This document shows, one piece after another, positions 28,261 through 58,113 of a stretch of 64,000 bases of DNA. Both the position numbers and the translations under genes were made by a program. How positions within the stretch are numbered: position 1 is the stretch's first letter; the number at the start of each line of letters is the position of its first letter. Location: assembly GCA_038496445.1 (NCBI GenBank), contig JALMLS010000487.1, forward strand, positions 1 through 64,000. Direction: 5' to 3'. The DNA comes from Trichosphaerium sp. ATCC 40318 (Eukaryota; Protista; Tubulinea). Below the pieces are notes generated by a model. It did no database searches. It saw nothing but the letters and a program-made list of their open reading frames with translations, and was not told where the DNA came from.

Positions 28261-29769
28261 TAAAGAAATAGACGCAAGACACAGATTTCAAAAGAAGGTA
28301 CTATCTTTAAAATGGGTAGCATTCATCAGTGACATAATTATTACCTTGTAGGAGCGTTTGTATAAACGCTTCACATTGAAAATGGCAGTATCTTGTAGCA
28401 CGAAACGAAAAAATAAAGTGTTAAATAAAGACAATCACAGTGAAAAGGGTCTTGAGGTTTTGTTAGCATTGTGAAGCTAGCAAGTGATTTGACAAGATGT
28501 CGCAAAGAAATCATCAGGAAAGCGTACAGTGATAGAGCGAAACAAGTGCGAACGGTTTTTCCCAATATACAGTTTTGAAAACAAAGAAACCCTTTTGGAT
28601 GGCAACACCTATTTTCTTTGTAGTTTGCAGTAATGTAGAACGCTTTTTTTAGCGGACACAAGACCTGATAACAAAACGAATTAGTTGAGCAGTTTTACGC
28701 CAGACCCAGTAATCATTTGTTTTTTGTTGTTTGATCACATGTCGAGAAAGTTTTTTTTTGTCTTGTGTTGCTATTTTCTATCTTTCAGTGTTTTCGTTTG
28801 TAACACTTTAGATTGTCAGAGTAGGCGATGGTTATTTAAATTCAGTGTTTTTGAGCTAGAGAACCAACAACACAGCTGGTATGAAAACGGCACCAAAGAA
28901 CTCTTTGCGCACCACAGTACGCTATCTAATCTCCAAAGAACGTGTATTTTGCGTAGAAGATTAACTATGATCTTTGTAGCGACATGAACGCTTCCAAACA
29001 TTCGTTGGAGCAAACTAACATAAGACTTAGAGTCTAAACTTTAATTAATGATGTAGTATCCATTGGTGATGACATGTTCACATAGCAATCCGCCATTCAG
29101 GTTTGAATAGTTCTGACCAAGTTTAGATGTACTCCGTGTACAGCTTCGCTTTGGTTATTTGCTTCATTCGCCTACATAGTTAACATTTAATCCAAAGCAA
29201 AAGTATCGACTAACCAACAGCGCTACGCGCCTTACACTAATTGTAAAGAAACTATTTTCTTGTTTTCTTCCCAGTGTTGTTTGGACACGCACAATGTGAG
29301 GCTCCTGACTGCGCTATATATGTTTGTAAGTCAAAAAATTTGTTCATTATGCTGTTTTTTGTAACCAAGTGGAAAAATTATTTTTATTGTCGGATTCTAT
29401 GCACTGATACATGTTGCATTAGTGTGCAAAGGATCAGGACAAAAATCGATTTTTCAAGCCAGATATGAGGACTTCTTTGTGGTTTTTTTGACCCAAAAAC
29501 GAGGAACATTTACAAATTGAGTGTCAGTTTGAAAATATAAAACACGCGTATTGACATGTAGATCTGTTGTTGAAAAAATCAGAACTGAACTTGACCGTGT
29601 TTGCCACAAATGTTACAATTCCTATTTTTTTCTGTATTTTCCACCGTGAGATAAACGCACGTGTTTCGTATCATTGACAGCTCATAAAAGTACATTCTAT
29701 CGTGAAGAGTTGACTTGAGTAATGTAACTATCTGGTCTCATGCACTGTGCTGGAGATTTTGTTACCTTT

Positions 29770-30480
29770 GAGAAGTTTACCAGCAATGCATGGTGACTTT
29801 GGTAGCCTGGGTTATTGGCTTCCCTCTTACGTTGTACTGGTCTTCAACCTTGTATCAGTGTTATCTTGTATATCAGTACAAATAAAGAATGCTGTTTATG
29901 TTGGATATATGTTGCCAGGAGTGACAAGAATCAAGGTAGGTGTTTTTCTTCCTTTACTCCAATATCATATGAAGCAGCACATTGTATATTTCGCTGGACA
30001 TAACATTTAGCAAATTATAGCGTAGTCAAAATACTGTAAAGTAGCCGTCATCCACTGACTGTTCCAAAAACCAGCCATTACAATACTGTAACGCTGCCTC
30101 TTTGCTTGTTCCTTGGACCATTAATATCACTGGTAACTAAATAACGATAACGAGGTTGGTTAGGCACCTTGTTGATGAACTTGCCTTGTCTTCTTGAAGC
30201 ATCTGTACTTGGATCTTTTGCTTTTCATTTGTACTTATTATTGTCATCGCCTTTACAAGTTTGCTTGAACAACTTTGGCACTTCTCTTCATGTACAGGTT
30301 TAGAGTCATCAAACGTAAAATGCTCTGTAGAATAAACGTACTGATGTCTGTGTCTTAGTATGTTATTGGACAGACTAGTCAATATCAAATAAGAGTTGCT
30401 TCAACAATAATTATCGTATTGGTCATAGCCATGTATTTTAGACAGTTGTTTGAGTATGTTGCATTCTCTGACAGCCATGT
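29770..30480 (-). pseudogene. Third, decayed paralog of the PARP-type ART domain
   Basis: Minus-strand relics QLSKIHGYDQ, ILRHRHQY, PVILMVQGTSKEAA, LILVTPGNIYP and GKPI/PGYQSHHA match the intact paralogs. Confidence 0.8.
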
Positions 30481-30913
30481 TATCGTTTGCGTCTAGAAGA
30501 TTTAGTGTTTTATAGTGTCGTTGGCAATAGTTTACGCTAACCTACTCATAATGTTAGAATAACCGTGCGCCAGCTAGACAATAAATATGCGACTGTTTGG
30601 GAGGAAAGACAACGTCTTAGTGGCTATCATAGCGCACTGATGTTGTATGTTTGTGAAATGCCGGTAGAAGTATTCATCCATTTTTTTTTGGCTCTGTAAT
30701 ATAATCTTGTATTGTGTCTGCTCCAGGCTATTAATCATTAACTTAATTGTTCGAAAGCTTACAAAATATTTCGAACAAAACAGCCAAAAAAAAAAAAGTC
30801 TTGTCACAGATAACGTTCGTTAACAGCCTCCTGTTTAAGCCATGGTTCGAAAATTTCAGACGAATTTTTTTCGAACAACCTTGTTCGAAAAAAAAAAGGG
30901 ACCTGTTTCACCG

Positions 30914-31005
30914 CTGTCACAGCGTACAACTCAAAGTAAGTAAGCGCCACTTGTACAGTTTTTTGAGCTATCACGTGATAAAAAAGAGCCAAAAGGCACG
31001 TATCA
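30914..31005 (+). promoter_or_regulatory. Conserved upstream block with ATCACGTGAT E-box palindrome
   Basis: About 280 bp upstream of the paralog A ATG; conserved at ~58360-58448 (paralog B) and, in degenerate form, at ~24189-24279. Confidence 0.45.
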
Positions 31006-31253
31006 ACCTGTTTTTATTTCAGTTGTGCGCAAAACCGCTGTATGCGCTAGTGGAACTTGATTATTTGGTTAATTTGTTGAAGAAAAACCAAACACCAGAA
31101 ACACAAAAACAACAACACCTGTTTACTCGCGCAAGTAAATAAACGGCTTTTTTTGATTCACTTTTTTTGAGCGAACCGGTTTGGAACGCACAACTCACAA
31201 TGTTTAGGAAGAATTTCACTAATTTCAAGTATCTACGTCGGCAGTCACAGCTC

Positions 31254-34200
31254 ATGTCGAACCAGGCGAAAAAAAAGAAATTAAAAGGTATTAACAACAA
31301 GTTGTTGGATACAGAATGTTTAATATTACCTCAGAAGAATTGAAACAACTTCAAAGGAAGGTGGAGTTCAAGGATATCACAACAGGTGTGCATTTTATAT
31401 CTTAGGCAGTTCATTTACAATTTATTTTTGTAGTAAATAAACTAAAGAAAAAGCTACGTAACCAAGAGACAGCCAATAAAATTCTATGGAATTCAGGTTT
31501 GTATAAATATGGTAGTACAGATATCAACCCAAATTAGCTTGGGGTAATTTGCCAAATATTTTGTCAATGTGTTTACAGGTCAATGCAAATATCAATGTTG
31601 TAGATAATGATGGCTGGACAGCTTTACATCATGCAGGTACAGTGTTGTAAATATACAATGTACTCACACTTCTCAGCATGTTATGGACACACACATATTG
31701 TACAATTATTGTTGGATGCTAATGCAAATATCAATGTTGTAGATAATGATGGCTGCACAGCTTTATATGATGCAGGTACAGTGTTGTAAATATACAATGT
31801 ACTCACACTTCTCAGCACGGCGTGGACACACAGATATTGTACAATTGTTGTTGGATGCTAATGCAAATACCAATGCAGATAATCATGGCTGCACAGCTTT
31901 ATATGATGCAGGTACAGTGTTGTAAATATACAATGTACTCACACTTCTCAGCACGGCATGGACACACAGATATTGTACAATTGTTGTTGGATGCTGATGC
32001 AAATATCAATGTTGTAGATAATGATGGCTGGACAGCTTTACATCATGCAGGTACAGTGTTGTAAATATACAATGTACTCACACTTCTCAGCATTGTATGG
32101 ATACAGAGATATTGTACAATTGTTGTTGGGTGCTAATGCAAATACCAATGCTGCAGATAATGATGGCTGTACAGCTTTACATCATGCAGGTACATTGTTG
32201 TAAAAATCTATATATGTTGCTGGATACATCTTTTTTAAAAAGCCACTTTAATTTTTACACTTACTAGCCAAAAATGGAGACAGCAAAGTTATTAAACTAT
32301 TAATTAAATACCGTGTAAACATTGATACAATTGATAACAAAGGATGGACTCCTTTATTTTATGCAGGTGATTACACATTATTATGCTACAATGATATGGT
32401 AACACTATTATTAGCACAGCATAAACAAACCTCAACATTTCTCATTTTATCAAATGCAAGTGATGTTTTCTCACGCACCATGAGCAAACAAAGAATTGAT
32501 TTTCAAACTGTATTGATGAAGGTGGTCGATAATGATCCTGCTTACACCAATGTGTTTGAAACTCTCTTGACACACTTTCCAACTGATAAACAACAAAGCC
32601 ACAAACTATGGCTATCATATGCTTATGATACAGATAGTCCACAATGGAGGTGCAATCTTGCAAAATGGTTACAGTACTTGGTACTTCTTTTTAATATCAA
32701 CAAATGTTGACTAATCACACCTCAAGCCTACACGCCATTACTTCAAGCTTGCAATTCAAAAAGGCATTTGTGCATTAATTTGTACTTACAATCGCATATT
32801 TGTACAATCTTTGGTACAAACTTCTCACTGGTTTCAAATTATTTATCATTATGTTAATGTAGAGCTTTTGGGTTATCCGTGGAGAACTGATGGAAGGTAT
32901 TTTGTTTGATTTACCAGATTACATGTGGAGTGAAAAACAAACTGGTACTGTTGCTGAAATGTGTGCAGAAGAAGGGTGGTGTATAAACTCCATTCAACCA
33001 GATCAAGATGACGGTACATGTCTATTAGTTTTTACATTGCAATATTTATTTTTATACAGTATTTAAGGACAATTTTGTATGCACTTATTGTGACAAGCAC
33101 AAACAAGAAAAAACTGTACATACATGACATAAAACAAGTTTTTAAACTGTTTGCAGAGGTTAATTTATAATGCTACACTGAAATGTAAGAGTAATCTTTA
33201 CACTATTGAACCTATCATACCAACTACAGCACTAATATACACTACAGCAGGTACAAACATCTCTGTTGTTTTAATCATTTGACTTGTTATCAAGGATTAA
33301 ATGGTACAACACCTTGGAGGTTGAACCCACGATTGGATTATGCACATGGCTGGGATAGGTCTAATAACAAGTTGAGTTTGTTCACGTTTCTATTGTGTTT
33401 AACAACAATAAAGGGGATTTGTTGAAAAGGCAACTCACTACAGGACATTGGATATTTTCAACAAGACTGACACTGTAGCCAAAAGAGAATTAGCATTTCT
33501 CCAAGACCAATTGTCTAAAATGCATGGATATGATCAAGTCAAACTTGTATCAGCACAACTTGTTTGCAATGATGTACTACTTCAAAACTTTGGCATGTAC
33601 ACTACGATACTCAAACATAGGCACCAGTATGTTTGCCTAACACAATGTTTTAGAAAGTACTTATACTTTGTTTCTAGAGAAGTACCCAAACTATTTTGTA
33701 AAAAAGATTGGCAAGGCAATGATCGAACAAGAATTGTCGAGAAGTTGTCATCTTTGACTGTTGATGAAGAAAGCTCAACTAACAAAGGAGAGGTACTTGT
33801 TCCAATACCATTCCTTACATAATCAATTGTTCAGTTACCTGTTGTGCTAATGGTGCATGGAACGAGTGCTAACGCTGCTAAGAGTATTGTAAAAGCTGGG
33901 TTTGGAACTGCAAGTGCATTGGATGCAGGATACTATGGACAAGGAATCTACTTTACAGTACTACTAATGTCAATTAAGTATTCTCTTTCTGATATTTTAT
34001 AATAGAGCAGTATCACATATGCTTGTTCTTATGACCGTGATTCAACTAAAAAAACACTGATTTTGAGTCTAGTTACACCTGGCAACACATATCCGGTACA
34101 GACACCGGTTGTATACATTGTATTTACAACAAGACTAGGTAATAGAAAGACCTGAAGACTCCAACAACCTTATGGGAAAACCTATTAAACCAGGATATCA

Positions 34201-34942
34201 AAGTCATTATGCAGTGGTAAACAACAAGGGAGAAGCAGTAAAAGAAAATATTGATAAGTATCCGCGTGATGAGTTGGTTGTGGCTCAAGGTAATGTCTGG
34301 TAGTATAATGCATTGTATTTATTGTTTGTTTAGATGTTCAAGCTGTTGCACGTTATGTCATTAAGGTTGTAAAGAAACCAAAGAAACGGGTTCAGAAGAA
34401 AGGTAAAACACCAAACAAGAAATCAAACAAGAACACCAAGACTTCCAACACAAGTATCAACAAAGAAGTAAAAGAAAAAGATAATTCAAAATCAGAAGAT
34501 GAAAGCGAGTCAGATGACCTGATTGATGAGGACGATTTCATAACTGAACGGTATGACATACACAAAACATAACAGCATATTAATTTACTCTTAAAGAAAA
34601 TTATGGGGAGCTGCCGATCGAAATCTACCAGAACAACCAAGCATGCAAGATAAGTTTGTAACATCCTTACAAGAACAAATTGAGAAGCTAAAGCAAAAGA
34701 ACAAAACCATCCTTGAAGAATCAAACACCGTAAAAGAGAAAAATGTAAAGCTTGAGGAATCAAAGTTCAAGCAACTCAAGAGAATCACTAAAATTGAGCA
34801 AGATAATGCCAACCACAAGGAAAACAACATCAAGCAACTTGAGAGAATCACTAAACTTGAGCAAGACAACTCTAAAATGGAAGAAGCGAATTCAGCTCTA
34901 GCAGAAAAATATGCCAAACTACTTGCTGAATTGAAGCCTTGA
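31254..34942 (+). CDS. Ankyrin-repeat / PARP-type ADP-ribosyltransferase / coiled-coil protein, paralog A (4 cassette ankyrin exons)
   Basis: Continuous reading frame after removing GT-AG introns; ankyrin repeats; ART triad MVHGT, YGQGIYFT, DELVV; Lys-rich and acidic linker; coiled-coil tail. Confidence 0.88.
31637..32189 (+). repeat. Tandem array of 139-bp intron+exon units (x4)
   Basis: Identical 40-nt introns gtacagtgttgtaaatatacaatgtactcacacttctcag; exons 31677-31775, 31816-31911 (96 nt), 31952-32050, 32091-32189. Confidence 0.95.
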
Positions 34943-36467
34943 GAGCAACTTGACCTCTTAGCTGCTCTGTTGGTTGAAATTATGTTTTGTTTCCAATAAA
35001 TAATACTTTTTGTTAGTGAGTTGTGTATATTTACAGATTGCATTCCATGAATACAAGGTAACCAACTATGTCCAATAAATTATGCAAAAACAATTGTTAG
35101 TTACATGCCTAAGTACCTGCACTGCATAACACCTTTTTTGTATTCTTTCAGAGTATTTGAACACAATATAAAGAAGAAATGACGATGTGTACACCAATTA
35201 CACAATGTAGCTATTCATAAACTTGTACTTAATCGAGTAGATGTGTTATGGAAAGATACTCTAAGTTTTTGGAGCAGTCACGCCAACTCCTTAAAAGGTT
35301 TTATTGCCTAAGCGATTAGGTTTTCTAATCAATGTTATACCTCGTAACCAATAGCACTAGTTATAGATTGAAAATCGTGAAAGACCTTCTCCCAAATGGG
35401 TTTTTTTACTTGATACGAAAGACCAAAAAATATCATTGTAAACATGACGTTAAACGAGCTTGTTTGAATCCTATTTAGTCAACACCAAAAAAAAAATTAT
35501 TGGTTTTTGCACTGAAAACAGGGTACAGTGTTTTGGTTTGGTATATTTCAGTTTTCTTCTGATGAAAGGTTGCTGAAGCAGCACAATGATCTTTATTGTA
35601 TGGCCGTGTTGATAAAAATATTGAGTTGCTTTTTTTTGACCAATTTTTTCAATAAACGACCGAAGAGAAAAGGCGCACTAGAATTAAAACACAAAAATAT
35701 TCTAGGTTGAACGACGTATTTATTACCAGCAAAAGGAAAAAATACCAAAAAAAAAGGGAATCACGTGATTAAAAAAAGACTGACGTTTTCTCGTTTTTTC
35801 CCTCTCAACAACATAATTTTTCAACATACTGTATTTCGTTATTTTGAAGCCTTTTCGCTAGCTGTAATATCCATACCCTTGAAAGTGATTACGTGAAGAG
35901 TCGAGAATCAATTATAGACCAACCCACAGATGCCAAATCTTTGCGGTGAAATGGTCAAACACTGCAAAAAGGCAATACACGCGCTCTAAGCCAAGGTTCG
36001 ATACCGTAACCAGCGCGTCTGTAATGATATAATAATGATGACTCTATCCTAAATTGCAGTTAACTTGTCCTGATATTAACAGTCAAATATATCTAGGAGT
36101 ACCATCCATGTTTGGATGTCACAGAAAACTGTTGCACAAACTCTTTACTATTCATAGCTTCAAGGATTAACCGCGAAAATCTGCGAGCTATGGGAAAGCG
36201 TGAGTTTTAACGTTACAAACAAGCACTGTTTTCAGTTGCTGAAAGGATAGTACTGATGAGACAAAGGAATAGGCTAAACAGTGCATGTGATATCTCTTGC
36301 ATTCTCTAGACCATCTTCGATTTAGTAACTCTCGTTTTATCGTACTAGAAAAAGACAGTTAGAAACAAAATTTTCCTAAAGTGCAGTTAGTATTAAAAAT
36401 AAACAAGCAAGTTTGGTTTTTAAGTTTTTATTAGGGTATTTAGAAATACAACCAAAAGGTGGAGCAC

Positions 36468-37898
<1,431 letters not shown>

Positions 37899-38816: not shown

Positions 38817-41800
38817 CTACTGTCCAGGGAACGAAGAGTAAGCAGGCACCTTCTTTTTCTTCTTTTTACCACTACTACCACCGTTTGAAGTTTCCTCTGT
38901 ACCAGGTAGATTATTATATTTAGGAACACCAGCACTTGCTCTACCATTTCCATGTCCGTTCTGATTGCCATTTGCAGAACCAGGAAAGTTAGAGTAAGCA
39001 GGTTGCTGTTTCTTTGTGTGACTAGGTGGTGGGAAACCGTAACTCAAACCAGAAGGATTTATAACTTTGTTTCCTCTAGCTACAACAAAAGTTAGAATTC
39101 GCTTCGCGTATCCAACGTAAAAGGAAGATTGGAAAAAACGACTCGTTTTTGATTTCGAAAGAGAAGCGTATTCTTTCAATTCTTCGCTTTATTTTCCCCA
39201 CTCCTTGTGAAAATACTGTTTTTTTCAGCGAAATAAATATAAAAGGTAATTCTGCAAGGGAAAAAGTGGAAAAAGAAATGAGTGTTTCGATTCTCTCTTT
39301 GTTTTGTTCGTTCTTTGTTGTGGTTGGTCTTACCTTTAGACTTCTTTAGCGGTAAAACAGTGTACTCCTCTGGTTCTGTATCTAAAGGACCTCCATCCCT
39401 CGTTGGTAAATCAGCATATTCCTCCTCAGGCTATAAAACTGTCAGTGATTTTAAAGAAAACAAATAAAGAAACCTTCTATAACGTACACTTGGAAATGAT
39501 CCGTACTGCGCAGGAGCATACTTTGCACGTGCAGGTGTAAGTGTACGGTGTGATGAAGAAGAATTAGCTCGATTTACCGATGGTCTAACTGGAATATCAA
39601 CATAGTCTCCTTGAGAATCATCAGAGTCTTCTTCATTGTTATTACCAGGGAAAGGTTGATAAGAAACTTGATCAGTCACAGGTGGAGCACGCCTTGTTCC
39701 ATTGTTTGTGTTGTTATCAATAGGTATAGGTTTATACTCTTCAGAGTCAGAACCATCAAACAGTTCCCCAGGTAATTGACCATATGACGGCGCTCCTGGA
39801 GGACCTGAACGGTTTGGTTTACTGCCAACCATTTGACGATTTGTATTTGGATGTTGTATAGACTTCGTAGGAATAGCAGAGTAGTCATCATCATCGCTTG
39901 TATTAGAACCATCGGGAAAGACACCATATGTTGATACGTCTGGTTTACTGCTCTTCCTTGAAGACTCATCACCATCTAAAGAAAATAAATGTAAGTACAA
40001 AGGTACATAAATAAAAAGTTCAAGTTTCTTCGTACATGAGCCACCAAAAGGCCTTCCTTGGCCGTTATTAGATGCATGCTCTGGGAATCCGCCATACGTT
40101 GATGGTGATCCGTTGTTCGAACCATGTTCTGGGAATCCACCGTATGTCGATGGTGATCCTTCATGAGATCCATGCTCTGGAAATCCACCGTATGTTGGTG
40201 GCGCTCCTTCATGCGATCCATGCTCTGGAAATCCGCCGTATGTGTTTGGTGGCCTCTCATTCGATGCACCCTCTGAGAAGTCTCCATAGGTACTTGGTGG
40301 TCTATCATTATTCGGACGAGGATTGGTATTATAACTTCTGCTTGGTGCTAAAGAAAATCATGTTAGCGCCAACATTGTTGAAAAAATAGAATAAAATTGA
40401 CGAACGTCTTTGGTTTGTTGTGTTTGTTAACGTGGCTCCATTTTGTTCACCAGGGAAAGAACCATATTGAGGTACTTGACGGTTTGTATTAGACATTCCA
40501 TAATCATTTCCACCCACTATTAGAAGAAATCAGTGACATACAATCTTAAGTTTAAAAAACGAACTTGAACCAGGAATAGGAACGTAATCTTCTTCATCTG
40601 GAGAAGACTCTGAACCTTCATCATCTGGGAATGGTCTGTACGATGCAGGTTTTGCTATACACAGTAATAAGCGAAAATAAAAGAGTATTTTGAGTACGTA
40701 CATCCTCCTTCAGGTATTACAATATAATTTTGTCCATCTGTTTGGTTTGCAAGCGCGGCAGATGATGTTCTTGGAACGCCCATAGTAGATCTAGCTGTAT
40801 TGTGTTGCCGAGACCTTGCTGTACTATGCTGAGATCTAGTTGTCATGTACTCTGACTGTGTTTGGCTACGTGCAGTAGCATGGTTCTGAGGTGGTTCAGG
40901 AAGACCCCTATTTTTGTTTGATGAGAAGTTCTGACTTTGTGCATAAAAACGCGTACAAGTATTCCGTTGGTACATGCTCATCAGAGCCCACTGATTTTTT
41001 ACTTGCAGCACTTACAACTGGCTTCGAAGATTTTGAAGTCTTTGAAGATCTTGAGGACTTTGGCCTCTTTGTCTGCCCACGAGAATTTGTACTAACATCA
41101 GGTTCACCAAAAGAAGTCGGAATCTACATATTGATTAAATAAAAAGAGTATCAAGTTTTTTTTCGAGAAAAAATATCACGTGTTGTATCACGTGGTTTGA
41201 AAAGAAATCAAAAGAGAAGTTGTATATGTATCGTACTGGATTACTAGATCGTGCAGCTGGTGTAGGCAATGGTGCATACTCACTATTTTGCTTTGGCGCA
41301 TGTGTTGTCTTTCTCTTGTTTGCTTTCTTAGCCTCTTTCTTTGTAGGTGCCAAGAAAGTTAGATTTTCAATAGGATTTTTGAATAATGTCTTGTTAGACT
41401 CAACAAGTTCGGTGAGTGTTGGATATATAAGATCTGACATATCATAACCGCTTGGTACAGGTTTTACAAGAGTATGTTTAACTGTTCCGTCCTATAATCC
41501 CATTAACAAAAGCAGAAAAAAAAAACTACAAAATAACTCCGCAGAAAAGACCAACAAATCAGCGTCACAATGCGCCATAATAATCATGTATTGCATACCT
41601 GATCAACAAAACTCACGCACATATATCCTCTTTTAGAACTGAATCTAAAAAGGAACGATCCAGGTTGTTTATCTAACAGAAATAAATAAAACTGTTTTAT
41701 GATCTTTTTTTTTGATAATTTCGGCTTTTTACTAAAGCTTTCAAATCACTTACCAGATAATAATTCTGTACACTCATTCGTATCTAAATCACCATGAAAC

Positions 41801-53431: not shown

Positions 53432-56400
53432 TCAAGTTGCTCTCAAGGCTTGCAATTCAGCAAGTAGTTTGGCATTTTTTTCTGCTAGAGCTGAATTCAC
53501 TTCTTCCATTTTAGAGTTGTCTTGCTCAAGTTTAGTGATTCTCTCAAGTTGCTTGGTGATGGCTTCCTCATGGTTGGTATTGGTTTTTTGGAGCATCAAG
53601 TTCACCTTTTGCAATTTGGTATTTGATTCCTCAAGCTTTACATTTTTCTCTTTTACGGTGTTTGATTCTTCAAGGATGGTTTTGTTCTCTTGCTTTAGTT
53701 TCTTGATTTCTTTGTTTTCTGCAAACTTATCTTGCATGATTGGTTGTTCTGGTAGATTTGGATCGGCAGCTCCCCATAATTTTCTTTAAGAGTAAATTAA
53801 TATGCTGTTATGTTTTGTATGTCATACCGTTCAGTTATGAAATCGTCCTCATCAATCAGGTCATCTGACTCGCTTTCATCTTCTGATTTTGAATTATTTT
53901 TTTCTTTTACTTGTTTGTTGATACTTTTGTTGGAAGTCTTGGTATTCTTGTTCGGTTTCTTCTTCTTGGTGTTCTTGTTTGATTTCTTGTTTGCTGTTTT
54001 ACCTTTCTTCTGAACCCGTTTCTTTTGTTTCTTTACAACCTTAATGACATAACGTGCAACAGCTTGAACATCTAAACAAACAATAAATACTACATTACAT
54101 TGTAGAATGTTACCTTGAGCCACAACCAACTCATCACACGGATACTTATCAACATCTTCTTTTACTGCTTGTCCCTTGTTGTTTACCACTGCATAATGAC
54201 TTTGATATCCTGGTTTAATAGGTTTTCCCTTAAGATTGTTTAAGTCTCCAGGTCTTTCTATTACCTAGTTTTGTATTAATACCAATGTACACAACCAAGT
54301 GTCTGTACCGGATATATGTTGCCAGGAGTGACTAGACTCAAAATAAGTGTCTTTTCAGTTGACTTTGGGTCATAAGCGCAGGCATATGTGATACTGCTCT
54401 ATTGTAAAATATTAGAAATAGAATACTTAATTTGACGTTAGTACTGTAAAGTAGATTCCTTGTCCATAATATCCGGCATCCAACGCACTTGCAGTTCCAA
54501 ATCCAGCTTTTACAATACTCTTAGCAGCCTCAGCACTTGTTCCATGCACCATTAACACAACAGGTAACTGAACAATTGATTATGTAAGGAATGGTATTGG
54601 AACAAGTACCTCTTCTTTATTACTTGAGCTTTCATCAGCAGTCAAAGATGACAATTTCTTGGCAATACTTGTTCGAGCATTGCCTTGCCAATCTTTCTTA
54701 CAAAATAGTTTGGGTACTTCTCTAGAAACAAAGTGTAAGTACTTTCTAAAACATTGTGTTAGGCGGACATACTGGTGCCTGTGTTTGAGTATTGTAGTGT
54801 ACATGCCAAAGTTTTGAAGTAATACATCATTGCAAACAAGTTGTGCTGATATAACAGTGACTTGATCATATCCATGCATTTTTGACAATTGGTCTTGGAG
54901 AAATGCTAATTCTCTTTTGGCTACAGTGTCAGTCTTGTTGAAAAGATCCAATGTCCTGTAGTGAGTTGCCTTTTCAACAAATCCCCTTTATTATTGTTAA
55001 ACACAATAGAAACATGAACAAACTCAACTTGTTGTTAGACCTATCCCAGCCATGTGCATAATCCAATCGTGGATTCAACCTCCAAGGTGTTGTACCATTT
55101 AATCCTTGATAACAAGTCAAATGACAAAAACAACAGAGATGTTTGTACCTGCTGTAGTGTCTTTTAGTGCTGTATTTGGTATGATAGGTTCAATAGTGTA
55201 AAGATTACTCTTACATTTCAGTGCAGCATTATCAATTAACCTCTACAAACAATTTAAAAACTTGTGTTATGTCATGTATGTGTACAGTTTTTTCCTGTTT
55301 GTGCTTGTCACAATAAGTGCATACAAAATCGTCCTCAAATGCTGTACAAAAATAAATATTGCAATGTAAAAACTAATAGACATGTACCTTCATCTTGTTT
55401 ATCAGTTTGAATGGAGTTTATACACCATCCTTCTTCAGCACACTTTTCAGCAACAGTACCAGTTTGTTTTTCACTCCACATGTTATCAGGTAAATCAAAC
55501 AAAATACCTTCCATCAGTTCTCCATGTTTAACCCAAAAGCTCTATTATAAAATAAACAGTTTGAACCAGTAAAGTGTTTGTACCGAAGATTGTACAAATA
55601 TGTGATTGTAAGAACAAATTAATGCACAAATGCCTTTTTGAATTGCAAGTTTGAAGTAATGGCGTGTGGGCTTGAGGTATGATTAGTCAACATTTGTTGA
55701 TATTAAAAAGGAGTACCAAATACTGTAACCATTTTGCAAGATTGCATCGCCATTGTGGACTATCTGTATCATAAGCATATGATAGCCATAGCTTGTGGCT
55801 TTGTTGTTTATCAGTTGGAAAGTGTGTCAAGAGAGTTTCAAACACATTGGTGTAAGCAGGATCATTATCGACCACCTTCATCAATACAGTTTTAAAATCA
55901 ATTGTTTGTCTGCTCATGGTGTGTGAGAAGACATCACTTGCATTTGATAAAAGGAGAAATGCTGAGGTGTGTTTATACTGTGCTAATAATAGTGTTAATA
56001 TATCATTGTAGTAATGTGTAATCACCTGCATAAAGCAAAGGAGTCCATCTTTTGTTATCAATTGTGTCAATGTTTATGTGGTATTTAATTAATAGTTTAA
56101 TAACTTTGCTGTCTCCATTTTTGGCTAATAAGTGTAAAAATTAAAGTGTCTTTCAAAAGAGATGTAGCCAGCAACATATAGAGCTTCTTACAACAATGTA
56201 CCTGCAAGATGTAAAGCTGTACAGCCTTCATTATCTGAAGCATTGATATTTGCATTAGCATCCAACAACAACTTAACAATATCTCTGTGGCCATGCTGTA
56301 CTGAGAAGTGTGAGTACATTGTATATTTACAACACTGTACCTGCACAATGTAAAGTTGTACAGCCATCATTATCTGAAGCATTGATATTTGCATTAGCAT

Positions 56401-58113
56401 TCAACAACAATTGTACAATATCTGCGTTTCCATACAATGCTGAGAAGTGTGAGTACATTGTATATTCACAACATTGTACCTGCACGATGTAAAGCTGTTT
56501 GGCCATCATTATCTGAAGCATTGATATTTGCATCAGCATCCAACAACAATTGTACAATATCTGTATTTCCATACAATGCTGAGAAGTGTGAGTGCATTGT
56601 ATATTTACAACATTGTACCTGCACAATGTAAAGCTGTCCAGCCATCATTATTTACAGCATTGATATTTGCCTTAGCATCCAACAACAATTGTACAATATC
56701 TGTATTTCCATACAATGCTGAGAAGTGTGAGTACATTGTATATTCACAACATTGTACCTGCACGATGTAAAGCTGTCCAGCCATCATTATTTACAGCATT
56801 GATATTTGCATTAGCATCCAACAACAACTTAACAATATTGGTGTTTCCATACCGTGCTGAGAAGTGAGTACATTGTATATTCACAACAATGTACCTGCAC
56901 GATGTAAAGCTGTACAGCCATCATTATCTGAAGCATTGATATTTGCATCAGCATCCAACAACAATTGTACAATATCTGTGTTTCCATACAATACTGAGAA
57001 GTGTGAGTACATTGTATATTCACAACAATGTACCTGCATGATGTAAAGCTGTCCAACCTTCATTATCTGAAGCATTGATATTTGCATCAGCATCCAACAA
57101 CAATTGTACAATATCTTTGTTTTCATACAATGCTGAGAAGTGTGAGTGCATTGTATATTCACAACATTGTACCTGCACGATGTAAAGCTGTCCAGCCATC
57201 ATTATTTACAGCATTGATATTTGCCTTAGCATTCAACAACAATCGTACAACTTTGGTGCGTCCATACCGTGCTGAGAAGTGAGTACATTGTATATTCACA
57301 ACAATGTACCTGCATGATGTAAAGCTGTCCAACCTTCATTATCTGAAGCATTGATATTTGCCTTAAAATTCAACAACCATTGCACAATATCTTTGTTTTC
57401 ATACAATACTGAGAAGTGTGAGTACATTGTATATTCACAACATTGTACCTGCACAATGTAAAGCTGTTTGGCCATCATTATTAGCATTGATATTTGCCTT
57501 AGCAATCAACAACAATTGCACAATATCTGTATTTCCATACAATGCTGAGAAGTGTGAGTACATTGTATATTTACAACACTGTACCTGCACGATGTAAAGC
57601 TGTCCAGCCATCATTATTTACAGCATTGATATTTGCATTAGCATCCAACAACAATTGTACAATATTGGTGTTTCCATACCGTGCTGAGAAGTGAGTACAT
57701 TGTATATTCACAACATTGTACCTGCACGATGTAAAGCTGTCCAGCCATCATTATTTACAGCATTGATATTTGCATTGGACTGTAAACACATTGACAAAAT
57801 ATTTGGCAAATTACCACAAGCTACTTTGGGTTGATATCTGTACTACCATTTAAACACAAACCTGAAAGCCATAGAATTTTATCAGCTGTCTCTTGTTTAT
57901 GTAGCTTTTTCTTTAGTTTATTTACTACAAATGCATTGGATATGAACAATACTGCCTACGATATAAAATGCACACCTGTTGTGATATCCTTGAACTCTTG
58001 ATCTTCCCTTTGAAGTTGTTTCAATTCTTCTGAAGTAATATTAAACATTCCTGTATCCCCAACAACTTGTTGTTAATACCTTTTAATTTCTTTTTTTTCG
58101 CCTGGTTCGACAT
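53432..58113 (-). CDS. Ankyrin-repeat / PARP-type ADP-ribosyltransferase / coiled-coil protein, paralog B (11 cassette ankyrin exons)
   Basis: Same exon structure as paralog A; ART triad MVHGT, YGQGIYFT, DELVV; ends LLAELQALRAT*. Confidence 0.88.
56202..57721 (-). repeat. Tandem array of ~139-bp intron+exon units (x11)
   Basis: Exons 57585-57683, 57449-57544 (96 nt), 57310-57408, 57173-57271, 57034-57132, 56895-56993, 56758-56856, 56619-56717, 56480-56578, 56341-56439, 56202-56300; introns 38 or 40 nt. Confidence 0.95.

Follow-up and report, generated by a model that had tools for sequence, protein, structure and literature searches.

The window analysed here, 64,000 nucleotides of DNA from Trichosphaerium sp. 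ATCC 40318 (positions 1 to 64,000 of contig JALMLS010000487.1), carries two paralogous genes, referred to as A and B, that encode an array of ankyrin (ANK) repeats followed by a linker, a domain that reads as a PARP-type ADP-ribosyltransferase (ART), a basic/acidic tail and a predicted coiled coil. These five parts, in this order, cover gene B fully. Both gene models were curated by hand as exons bounded by GT-AG introns, with the splice junctions inferred from the DNA, and the features of the pair are as follows.

31254-34942, forward strand: gene A, 22 exons encoding 905 aa when counted from the ATG at 31316, collinear with gene B except in cassette number.
31538-32189, forward strand: ankyrin array of gene A, comprising exon 4 (N-cap) and exons 5-8 (four internal cassettes), exon 6 being of 96 nt.
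32268-32366, forward strand: C-cap ankyrin exon 9 of gene A, from the GT-AG model.
33414-34289, forward strand: predicted PARP-type ART domain of gene A, exons 16-20, with the H codon at 33856.
53432-58113, reverse strand: gene B, 29 exons, manual GT-AG model with the frame open throughout.
56202-57820, reverse strand: ankyrin cassette array of gene B, comprising exon 4 (N-cap) and exons 5-15 (11 internal cassettes).
56026-56124, reverse strand: C-cap ankyrin exon 16 of gene B, after a 77-nt intron (56125-56201), conserved in 19-20 paralog loci.
55020-55982, reverse strand: linker of gene B, exons 17-22, a half-repeat cap and then a region of ~200 aa belonging to no Pfam family.
54114-54985, reverse strand: predicted PARP-type ART domain of gene B, exons 23-27, with a partial PF00644 match on exon 25.
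53432-54071, reverse strand: tail of gene B, exon 28 lysine-rich and then acidic, exon 29 a predicted coiled coil of ~115 aa to the stop codon.
30843-35314: inverted duplication matching 58519-53086 at ~87-90% identity (blastn of the window against itself).

The array of gene B had been placed at 56202-57820 by an initial annotation of the sequence, which is the exact span of exons 4-15 in the curated model, and its account of one 99-nt exon per ankyrin repeat, a single 96-nt exon per gene and phase-1 introns of 38-40 nt agrees with both models. All cassettes of gene B measure 99 nt save exon 6 (96 nt), and in A and B alike the 96-nt exon is the second internal cassette. Cassettes begin and finish in phase 1 (G/CA or G/TA), and a 99-nt exon yields a 33-residue ankyrin repeat. 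Vertebrate ankyrin genes also put many of their repeats on single 99-nt exons. The difference in cassette number, 4 in A versus 11 in B with the remainder of the genes collinear, likewise stood up to curation and to Tandem Repeats Finder, which reported a 139-nt period with 11.5 copies in gene B (56190-57776, 88% matches) and with 4.5 copies in gene A (31582-32204, 92% matches). The four introns separating the array exons of gene A are identical 40-mers, and the lengths of those in gene B run 38-40-40 three times and then 40-40. After the array, both genes have a 77-78-nt intron, the C-cap ankyrin exon and a half-repeat, and from there they are collinear to the stop codon. A read-through translation across one gene B cassette matched the Pfam families Ank, Ank_2, Ank_4 and Ank_5 above their cut-offs, and the consensus positions of the 33-residue repeat (G-x-T-x-L-H-x-A, L-L) were nearly invariant among 156 cassettes from 21 genes.

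Translation starts had been assigned to 58113 in gene B and 31254 in gene A. This first ATG is in frame for B, where it gives a protein of 1160 aa, but not for A, which is 3 nt shorter near the acceptor of the first intron (by two intronic nucleotides and the opening one of exon 2) and so loses the frame; the second ATG (58048, giving 1148 aa in B, and 31316 in A) is in frame for both. The short exon that opens at the upstream ATG (MSNQAKKKKLK, 58080-58113 and 31254-31287) is conserved in the two genes and may represent a conserved upstream open reading frame or an alternative start. Six junctions of gene B (17/18, 23/24, 24/25, 25/26, 27/28 and 28/29) were aligned without gaps by two intron-free homologs from other samples, P0001 and P0002, while the tentative exons 20 and 21 (55286-55341 and 55149-55242) have no counterpart in either. 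The first of these, the 56-nt exon AFEDDFVCTYCDKHKQEKT, is Cys/His-rich, occurs at 55286-55341 and 33060-33115 and was found only in A, B and the paralogs L010 and L017; it is either a lineage-specific micro-exon or a piece of a longer intron.

Genes A and B go back to a recent inverted duplication. They lie tail to tail, 18 kb apart, with a synonymous divergence (dS) of 0.10-0.14 and a difference of 8.2% in their non-array introns, and the duplicated segment consists of the gene plus ~400 bp on either side. Carriage of the gene on a discrete mobile element was ruled out, since homology among paralogs stops at variable points near the gene borders.

Since this split, the arrays appear to have turned over. 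Cassette exons within an array are 78-97% identical, and their divergence (10.9% within A, 13.4% within B) is 3-4 times that of the array introns (0% within A, 3.6% within B); synonymous divergence also exceeds intron divergence. Counted as segregating sites, the contrast amounts to 19/99 in exons versus 0/40 in introns for gene A (Fisher p 0.0017) and 37/99 versus 3/40 for gene B (Fisher p 0.0003). A genome search with the 40-nt intron, proposed at the outset as a means of counting the family, returned 24 matches, all within ANK-ART arrays on the two contigs C64 and C552; on these grounds a mobile "introner" was ruled out as the nature of the near-identical intron. A conserved intron hairpin was also rejected as the cause of intron identity, the minimum free energy (about -6 kcal/mol, z -0.55 to -0.74) being no better than that of shuffled sequences. 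Our best guess, which does not fully explain the contrast between exons and introns, is that homogenisation is opposed by selection holding exon haplotypes apart.

Exon halves held in common within a gene point to gene conversion. The 3' halves of exons 4, 5, 8 and 11 of gene B are identical to one another, as are those of exons 4 and 7 of gene A, and the 5' halves of the N-cap exons are orthologous between A and B (94%). Gene B combines the 38-40-40 intron pattern with a 415-bp period (Tandem Repeats Finder), and therefore appears to have grown by three-unit blocks. The paralogs L014 and L015, which are 92-94% identical, differ by one cassette, and the junction falls within an exon. Because recombination junctions also lie inside exons, the arrays would change by unequal recombination or conversion in any register rather than by clean exon swaps. 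The initial annotation had held that any cassette could be gained, lost or swapped without breaking the frame; gain and loss in frame come about as a matter of course when a tandemly duplicated exon-plus-intron unit has an exon length divisible by three, and exchange as clean exon units does not hold, as breakpoints also occur inside exons.

By its sequence, the C-terminal half of the proteins reads as a catalytic domain of the PARP family, with H-Y-E retained. The motifs MVHGT, GQGIYFT and DELVV are present in both A and B (in gene B, codons H 54546-54544, Y 54453-54451 and E 54132-54130), and the early assignment to PARP-type ART on the basis of HGT, GIYFT and DELVV is supported by the partial, below-cut-off PF00644 match of exon 25, by the homologs and by profile hits. 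Taken alone, exon 25 of gene B, a short piece, scored 22.1 bits against PF00644 (E 1.2e-4; cut-off 26.7); the cut-off was passed by P0001 (30.9 bits) and P0002 (36.5-38.2 bits), and 7/7 relatives matched the family. A PF00644 scan of the whole genome did not list loci of the A/B type exon by exon. A profile built from the seven relatives matched the solved structures of PARP12 (E 3e-9), PARP10, ZAP, PARP4 and PARP15. The H and Y motifs align with HGTS and YGKGSYF of PARP12, which are NAD+-site residues, and the glutamate of DELVV, invariant in the family alignment, aligns with DDEFVV of PARP4, the motif that we take to hold the catalytic Glu of that enzyme. Invariant stretches of the family alignment are G-T, G-I-Y-x-T and E-L-V, and all three H-Y-E motifs were found in 19 of the 20 closest paralogs, the H motif of L017 not being recovered. 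Language-model features placed residues 60-330 of P0002 among PARP catalytic clusters at 0.96, and an AlphaFold2 model of residues 1-430 of P0001 (13-row alignment) reached a mean pLDDT of only 42.

The linker exons matched no Pfam family, and an Atlas search found no look-alike for the linker. Pfam matches of the gene B tail were to weak coiled-coil families. The coiled coil and the lack of a SAM domain noted in the initial annotation are both borne out: no SAM was detected by Pfam in the scanned gene B exons (exons 1-3, 18 and 28 were not scanned singly), P0001 or P0002. Nor was there a WGR or PRD domain, Pfam searches of the linker exons and the full-length homologs returning only PARP and weak coiled-coil families.

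The pair belongs to a large family. In the genome (642 contigs, 70 Mb), 120 places match the ART exon, ~104 of them strongly (E 1e-11 or lower, 61-100% identity), and 59 match linker exon 17; further members had been anticipated from the two genes, and by the ART exon there are about a hundred. Matches are frequently clustered or arranged as inverted pairs on one contig. Scores of the ART exon are near-identical on the small contigs C554, C557, C467, C553, C264, C277 and C535, the first four being identical, which suggests either very recent copies or uncollapsed alleles.

Paralog structure was surveyed at the 20 loci closest to A and B, and arrays of 4-12 one-repeat exons were present in 19 of them. 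Beside the 4 internal cassettes of A and the 11 of B, the other paralogs have 5-12, and the close pair L014 and L015 differ as 11 to 12. In most of the surveyed paralogs the array introns have drifted to 36-64 nt, and since this is combined with arrays at 19/20 loci, the exon-per-repeat design is ancestral to the ANK-ART family. Near-identical introns are instead the mark of recently remodelled arrays, namely those of A, B, L007, L017 and L016 (the last with introns of a 52-nt type). The L016 array (G000:C477, 3908-5370) has a period of 151 nt, made up of a 99-nt exon and a 52-nt intron.

Outside this genome, relatives are scarce. A search run exhaustively over 1.84 billion representative proteins with an N-terminal ART query found two true relatives only, each in a JGI sample: P0001, of 590 aa, and P0002, of 450 aa. 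Both are 38-40% identical to the last ~640 aa of gene B, through the linker, ART domain, basic/acidic stretch and coiled coil. The third match, P0003, a fish immunoglobulin (Ig)-repeat protein, was rejected as spurious. Five further, distant relatives were recovered by a word-based search, among them P0008, in which ANK and PARP are likewise combined. Upstream of P0001, positions 2-784 of its contig (L021; JGI 3300016894, 2604 nt) encode at least seven seamless ankyrin repeats free of introns, with a stretch of N between them and the P0001 frame, and the two called genes are probably a single ANK-PARP transcript of a related organism. In three distant relatives (P0004, P0006 and P0007), QGTS replaces HGTS while Y and E are kept, and these may be inactive members or members of altered specificity. 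With only two close relatives among 1.8 billion representatives, the ANK-ART family is essentially undescribed.

Selection differs between the array and the remainder of the gene. In the linker and ART domain, the ratio of nonsynonymous to synonymous divergence (dN/dS) between A and B is 0.32-0.40, which indicates purifying selection on these parts of both genes. Among cassettes, the corresponding ratio of the proportions of nonsynonymous and synonymous differences (pN/pS) is 1.0-1.5. The binding face was assessed through six codons picked beforehand for matching the positions randomised in designed ankyrin repeat proteins (DARPins). At these codons pN was 0.25 versus a pS of 0.12, a pN reached by random six-codon sets in 231/20000 draws. 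Across the 156 cassettes of 21 genes, the most variable sites include the DARPin positions as well as position 10 and sites on the outer helix. The variable ankyrin surface proposed initially is thus in keeping with the substitution excess on the binding face, the pN/pS of the cassettes and the differences in cassette number between close paralogs.

Other features of the window are of less direct concern. An actin gene (36468-37313, reverse strand; PF00022, E 3e-104) lies between A and B, and its surroundings are the sole GC-richer part of the window (43.5% GC at 36-38 kb). At 40067-40275 there is a tandem 48-nt (16-codon) repeat in 3-4 copies of 75-83% identity, which probably encodes a proline/glycine-rich peptide repeat. 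A tRNA gene is located at 1559-1633 on the reverse strand (Rfam RF00005, 64 bits). Upstream of gene A, short dispersed repeats (29365-29513 and 30050-30144) recur at 77-83% identity near several paralogs (L002, L003, L004, L013, L016 and L019); they could belong to a small element, either mobile or regulatory.

Fusions of ankyrin repeats with PARP domains have arisen independently several times (PMC2964712, PMC4245714). Tankyrases add a SAM domain to them, clade 1A proteins add WGR and PRD, and further cases occur in Naegleria, Monosiga and Dictyostelium (PMC2964712, PMC4245714). Like A and B, tankyrases (PARP clade 4) have an N-terminal ANK array, a C-terminal PARP domain with H-Y-E and a self-association module, and a common logic, in which the array would recruit the substrate, is likely by analogy. 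However, tankyrases have a SAM domain where A and B have a C-terminal coiled coil, which may substitute for the polymerising SAM, and A and B have in addition a family-specific linker between ANK and PARP. Their catalytic domain is by profile nearest PARP12, PARP10, PARP15, ZAP and PARP4 and not tankyrase, and about a hundred copies are present here. Clade 1A proteins (Dictyostelium ADPRT3 and C. elegans PME-5, with ANK, WGR, PRD and PARP) also represent ANK and PARP fusion in Amoebozoa and other protists, but as one or few DNA-damage-related genes with WGR and PRD, whereas the A/B family is large and neither domain was detected in the scanned exons or the full-length homologs. The A/B architecture matches neither of the defined ANK-PARP types.

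The organisation of the arrays has its closest counterparts elsewhere. Shuffling of one-repeat exons in candidate receptors is known in brown algae (PMC3341825, PMC11378527), and alternative splicing has been reported for the NB-ARC-TPR/ROCO genes of Ectocarpus (PMC11378527). In the LRR-ROCO and NB-ARC-TPR genes of that alga, exons of constant length and neutral frame hold one repeat each and repeat number varies among clustered paralogs, and A and B likewise have repeat exons of constant length and symmetric phase with repeat number varying between paralogs. The algal receptors also have signs of positive selection at ligand-facing residues, a role in defence having been proposed for them but not shown. 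They differ in their effectors, which are GTPase or NB-ARC domains as opposed to the PARP-type ART joined to ANK repeats in A and B, and the tiny, near-identical introns of 38-40 nt and the phase 1-1 exons set A and B apart. In fungal NLRs, ANK arrays are internally conserved and positively selected with repeat-number polymorphism (PMC4986451); like A and B, these receptors (with ANK, TPR or WD repeats) combine internal conservation, differences in repeat number, concerted evolution and diversification of the concave face, although their switch is a NACHT or NB-ARC domain and their effectors are different, and their repeats are not described as one exon each in PMC4986451. The nearest solved catalytic domains by profile belong to interferon-induced, antiviral mono-ART PARPs (PARP12, PARP10, PARP14/15 and ZAP), several of which evolve rapidly in mammals in host-virus conflicts (PMC4038475). 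In these mammalian proteins, targeting depends on zinc-finger, WWE, macro or RRM domains and the triad is mostly H-Y-I/L/Y, whereas A and B keep the glutamate and use ANK arrays. The ANK-PARP fusion itself was already known (PMC2964712, PMC4245714); what we did not find described in the literature is a family of about a hundred ANK-PARP members together with cassettes of one exon plus a tiny intron and a signature of diversification.

We consider it fairly probable that A and B are intact recent duplicates within a large, lineage-specific family of ankyrin-targeted PARP-type transferases, the arrays of which are diversifying in the germ line. In such proteins, the ankyrin array would serve as a target-binding arm, followed by the family-specific linker; the ART domain, keeping H-Y-E, would act as an intracellular enzyme, and the C-terminal coiled coil probably makes the protein oligomeric. 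In the germ line, unequal homologous recombination would add or remove exon-plus-intron units of 137-139 bp or convert one to another, and because each repeat sits on a symmetric phase 1-1 exon, units could turn over without breaking the frame. Turnover of this kind since the split of A and B would have led to 4 versus 11 cassettes, with B growing partly by three-unit blocks. Selection would hold the repeat framework and the enzyme, and would favour or tolerate change at exposed ankyrin positions, chiefly on the binding face. The most likely job of the protein would be ADP-ribosylation of an array-bound target by tankyrase-like logic, and between them the family members would deal with many rapidly changing targets, which are plausibly viral or bacterial proteins or those of other genetic parasites. 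Conflict with parasites is plausible because of the size and clustering of the family and the catalytic kinship with fast-evolving antiviral PARPs (PMC4038475).

Several points weigh against this reading. Splicing, expression and the exact number of cassettes are predicted from the DNA sequence, and the count of ~104 ART matches probably includes some allelic contigs (L011 and L012, for instance, are 99.8% identical). The ART fold is predicted from sequence profiles and language-model features, and H-Y-E neither proves activity nor separates mono- from poly-ADP-ribosylation. A cassette pN/pS near 1 is equally expected under relaxed constraint, and change is no more than moderately enriched on the binding face (p ~0.01), with outer-helix positions varying too. 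A role of the family in infection or non-self recognition is conjectural, and no relatives were found on viral contigs (IMG/VR).

The same observations can be pressed further, toward a germline recognition repertoire. In such a system, about a hundred ANK sensors fused to ART would each bind a different fast-evolving foreign protein (of a giant virus, bacterium or parasite), which would be neutralised or flagged by ADP-ribosylation with no NTPase switch, and new specificities would come about through unequal recombination of cassettes. We put this forward tentatively, as a possible but unlikely extension of the transferase-family interpretation.

A serious rival, if on balance an unlikely one, is that these are ordinary housekeeping or regulatory scaffold enzymes comparable to tankyrases, with arrays that drift neutrally and no recognition repertoire. 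It is taken seriously because the cassette-wide pN/pS of ~1 is the neutral expectation; moreover, tandem repeats recombine easily, exposed ankyrin residues are weakly constrained and variable in all ankyrin proteins, outer-helix positions outside the canonical binding face vary as well, and cellular roles are known for ANK-PARP fusions (PMC2964712, PMC4245714). Neutral drift is nonetheless difficult to reconcile with about a hundred retained copies, H-Y-E in 19/20 paralogs and purifying selection on linker and ART, with a pN about twice pS at binding-face codons chosen in advance, and with exon divergence 3-4 fold above that of introns, as if exon haplotypes were being held distinct in the face of homogenisation.

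The initial annotation had favoured NLR-like defence receptors, in which an ankyrin surface is reprogrammed by skipping or swapping of cassettes and a ligand unleashes an NAD+-consuming effector. We regard this model as doubtful, although it has points in its favour: symmetric phase 1-1 exons would make skipping frame-neutral, the family is large and clustered, cassette number varies with a substitution excess on the binding face, and there is the analogy with Ectocarpus ROCO and NB-ARC-TPR genes (PMC3341825, PMC11378527) and the ANK repeats of fungal NLRs (PMC4986451). Membership of the NLR class does not hold, as Pfam gave no match to NB-ARC, NACHT or any other NTPase domain, and thus no switch, in the scanned gene B exons or the full-length homologs. 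PARP-type domains modify targets, and the nearest solved structures here are of PARP12, PARP10, PARP15, ZAP and PARP4. In addition, introns of 38-40 nt suggest splicing by intron definition, under which exon skipping is rare, and the junctions within exons mean that the exon is not the unit of exchange. The observations of the initial annotation are in sum confirmed and its interpretation partly supported. That the arrays are instead assembly artefacts, or the genes decaying pseudogenes, is very improbable, since, although assemblers could collapse or expand cassette exons that are 78-97% identical and the first-ATG frame of gene A is broken, each unit of gene B carries its own combination of substitutions, the frames stay open across the 22 exons of A and the 29 of B, all introns being canonical GT-AG ones, the sequence beyond the array has a dN/dS of 0.3-0.4, and the architecture recurs at 19 other loci and on an intron-free contig of another sample.

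The ANK-ART family offers an unusually clean natural case in which a repeat-per-exon layout, tiny introns and unequal recombination would generate binding diversity, and a pair standing at 4 and 11 cassettes makes the array process datable. If the family does form a recognition repertoire, it would represent a coupling of receptor and effector that resembles immunity yet needs no NLR-type switch, and the part played by PARP-type ADP-ribosylation in host-parasite conflict would extend from vertebrates to amoeboid protists.

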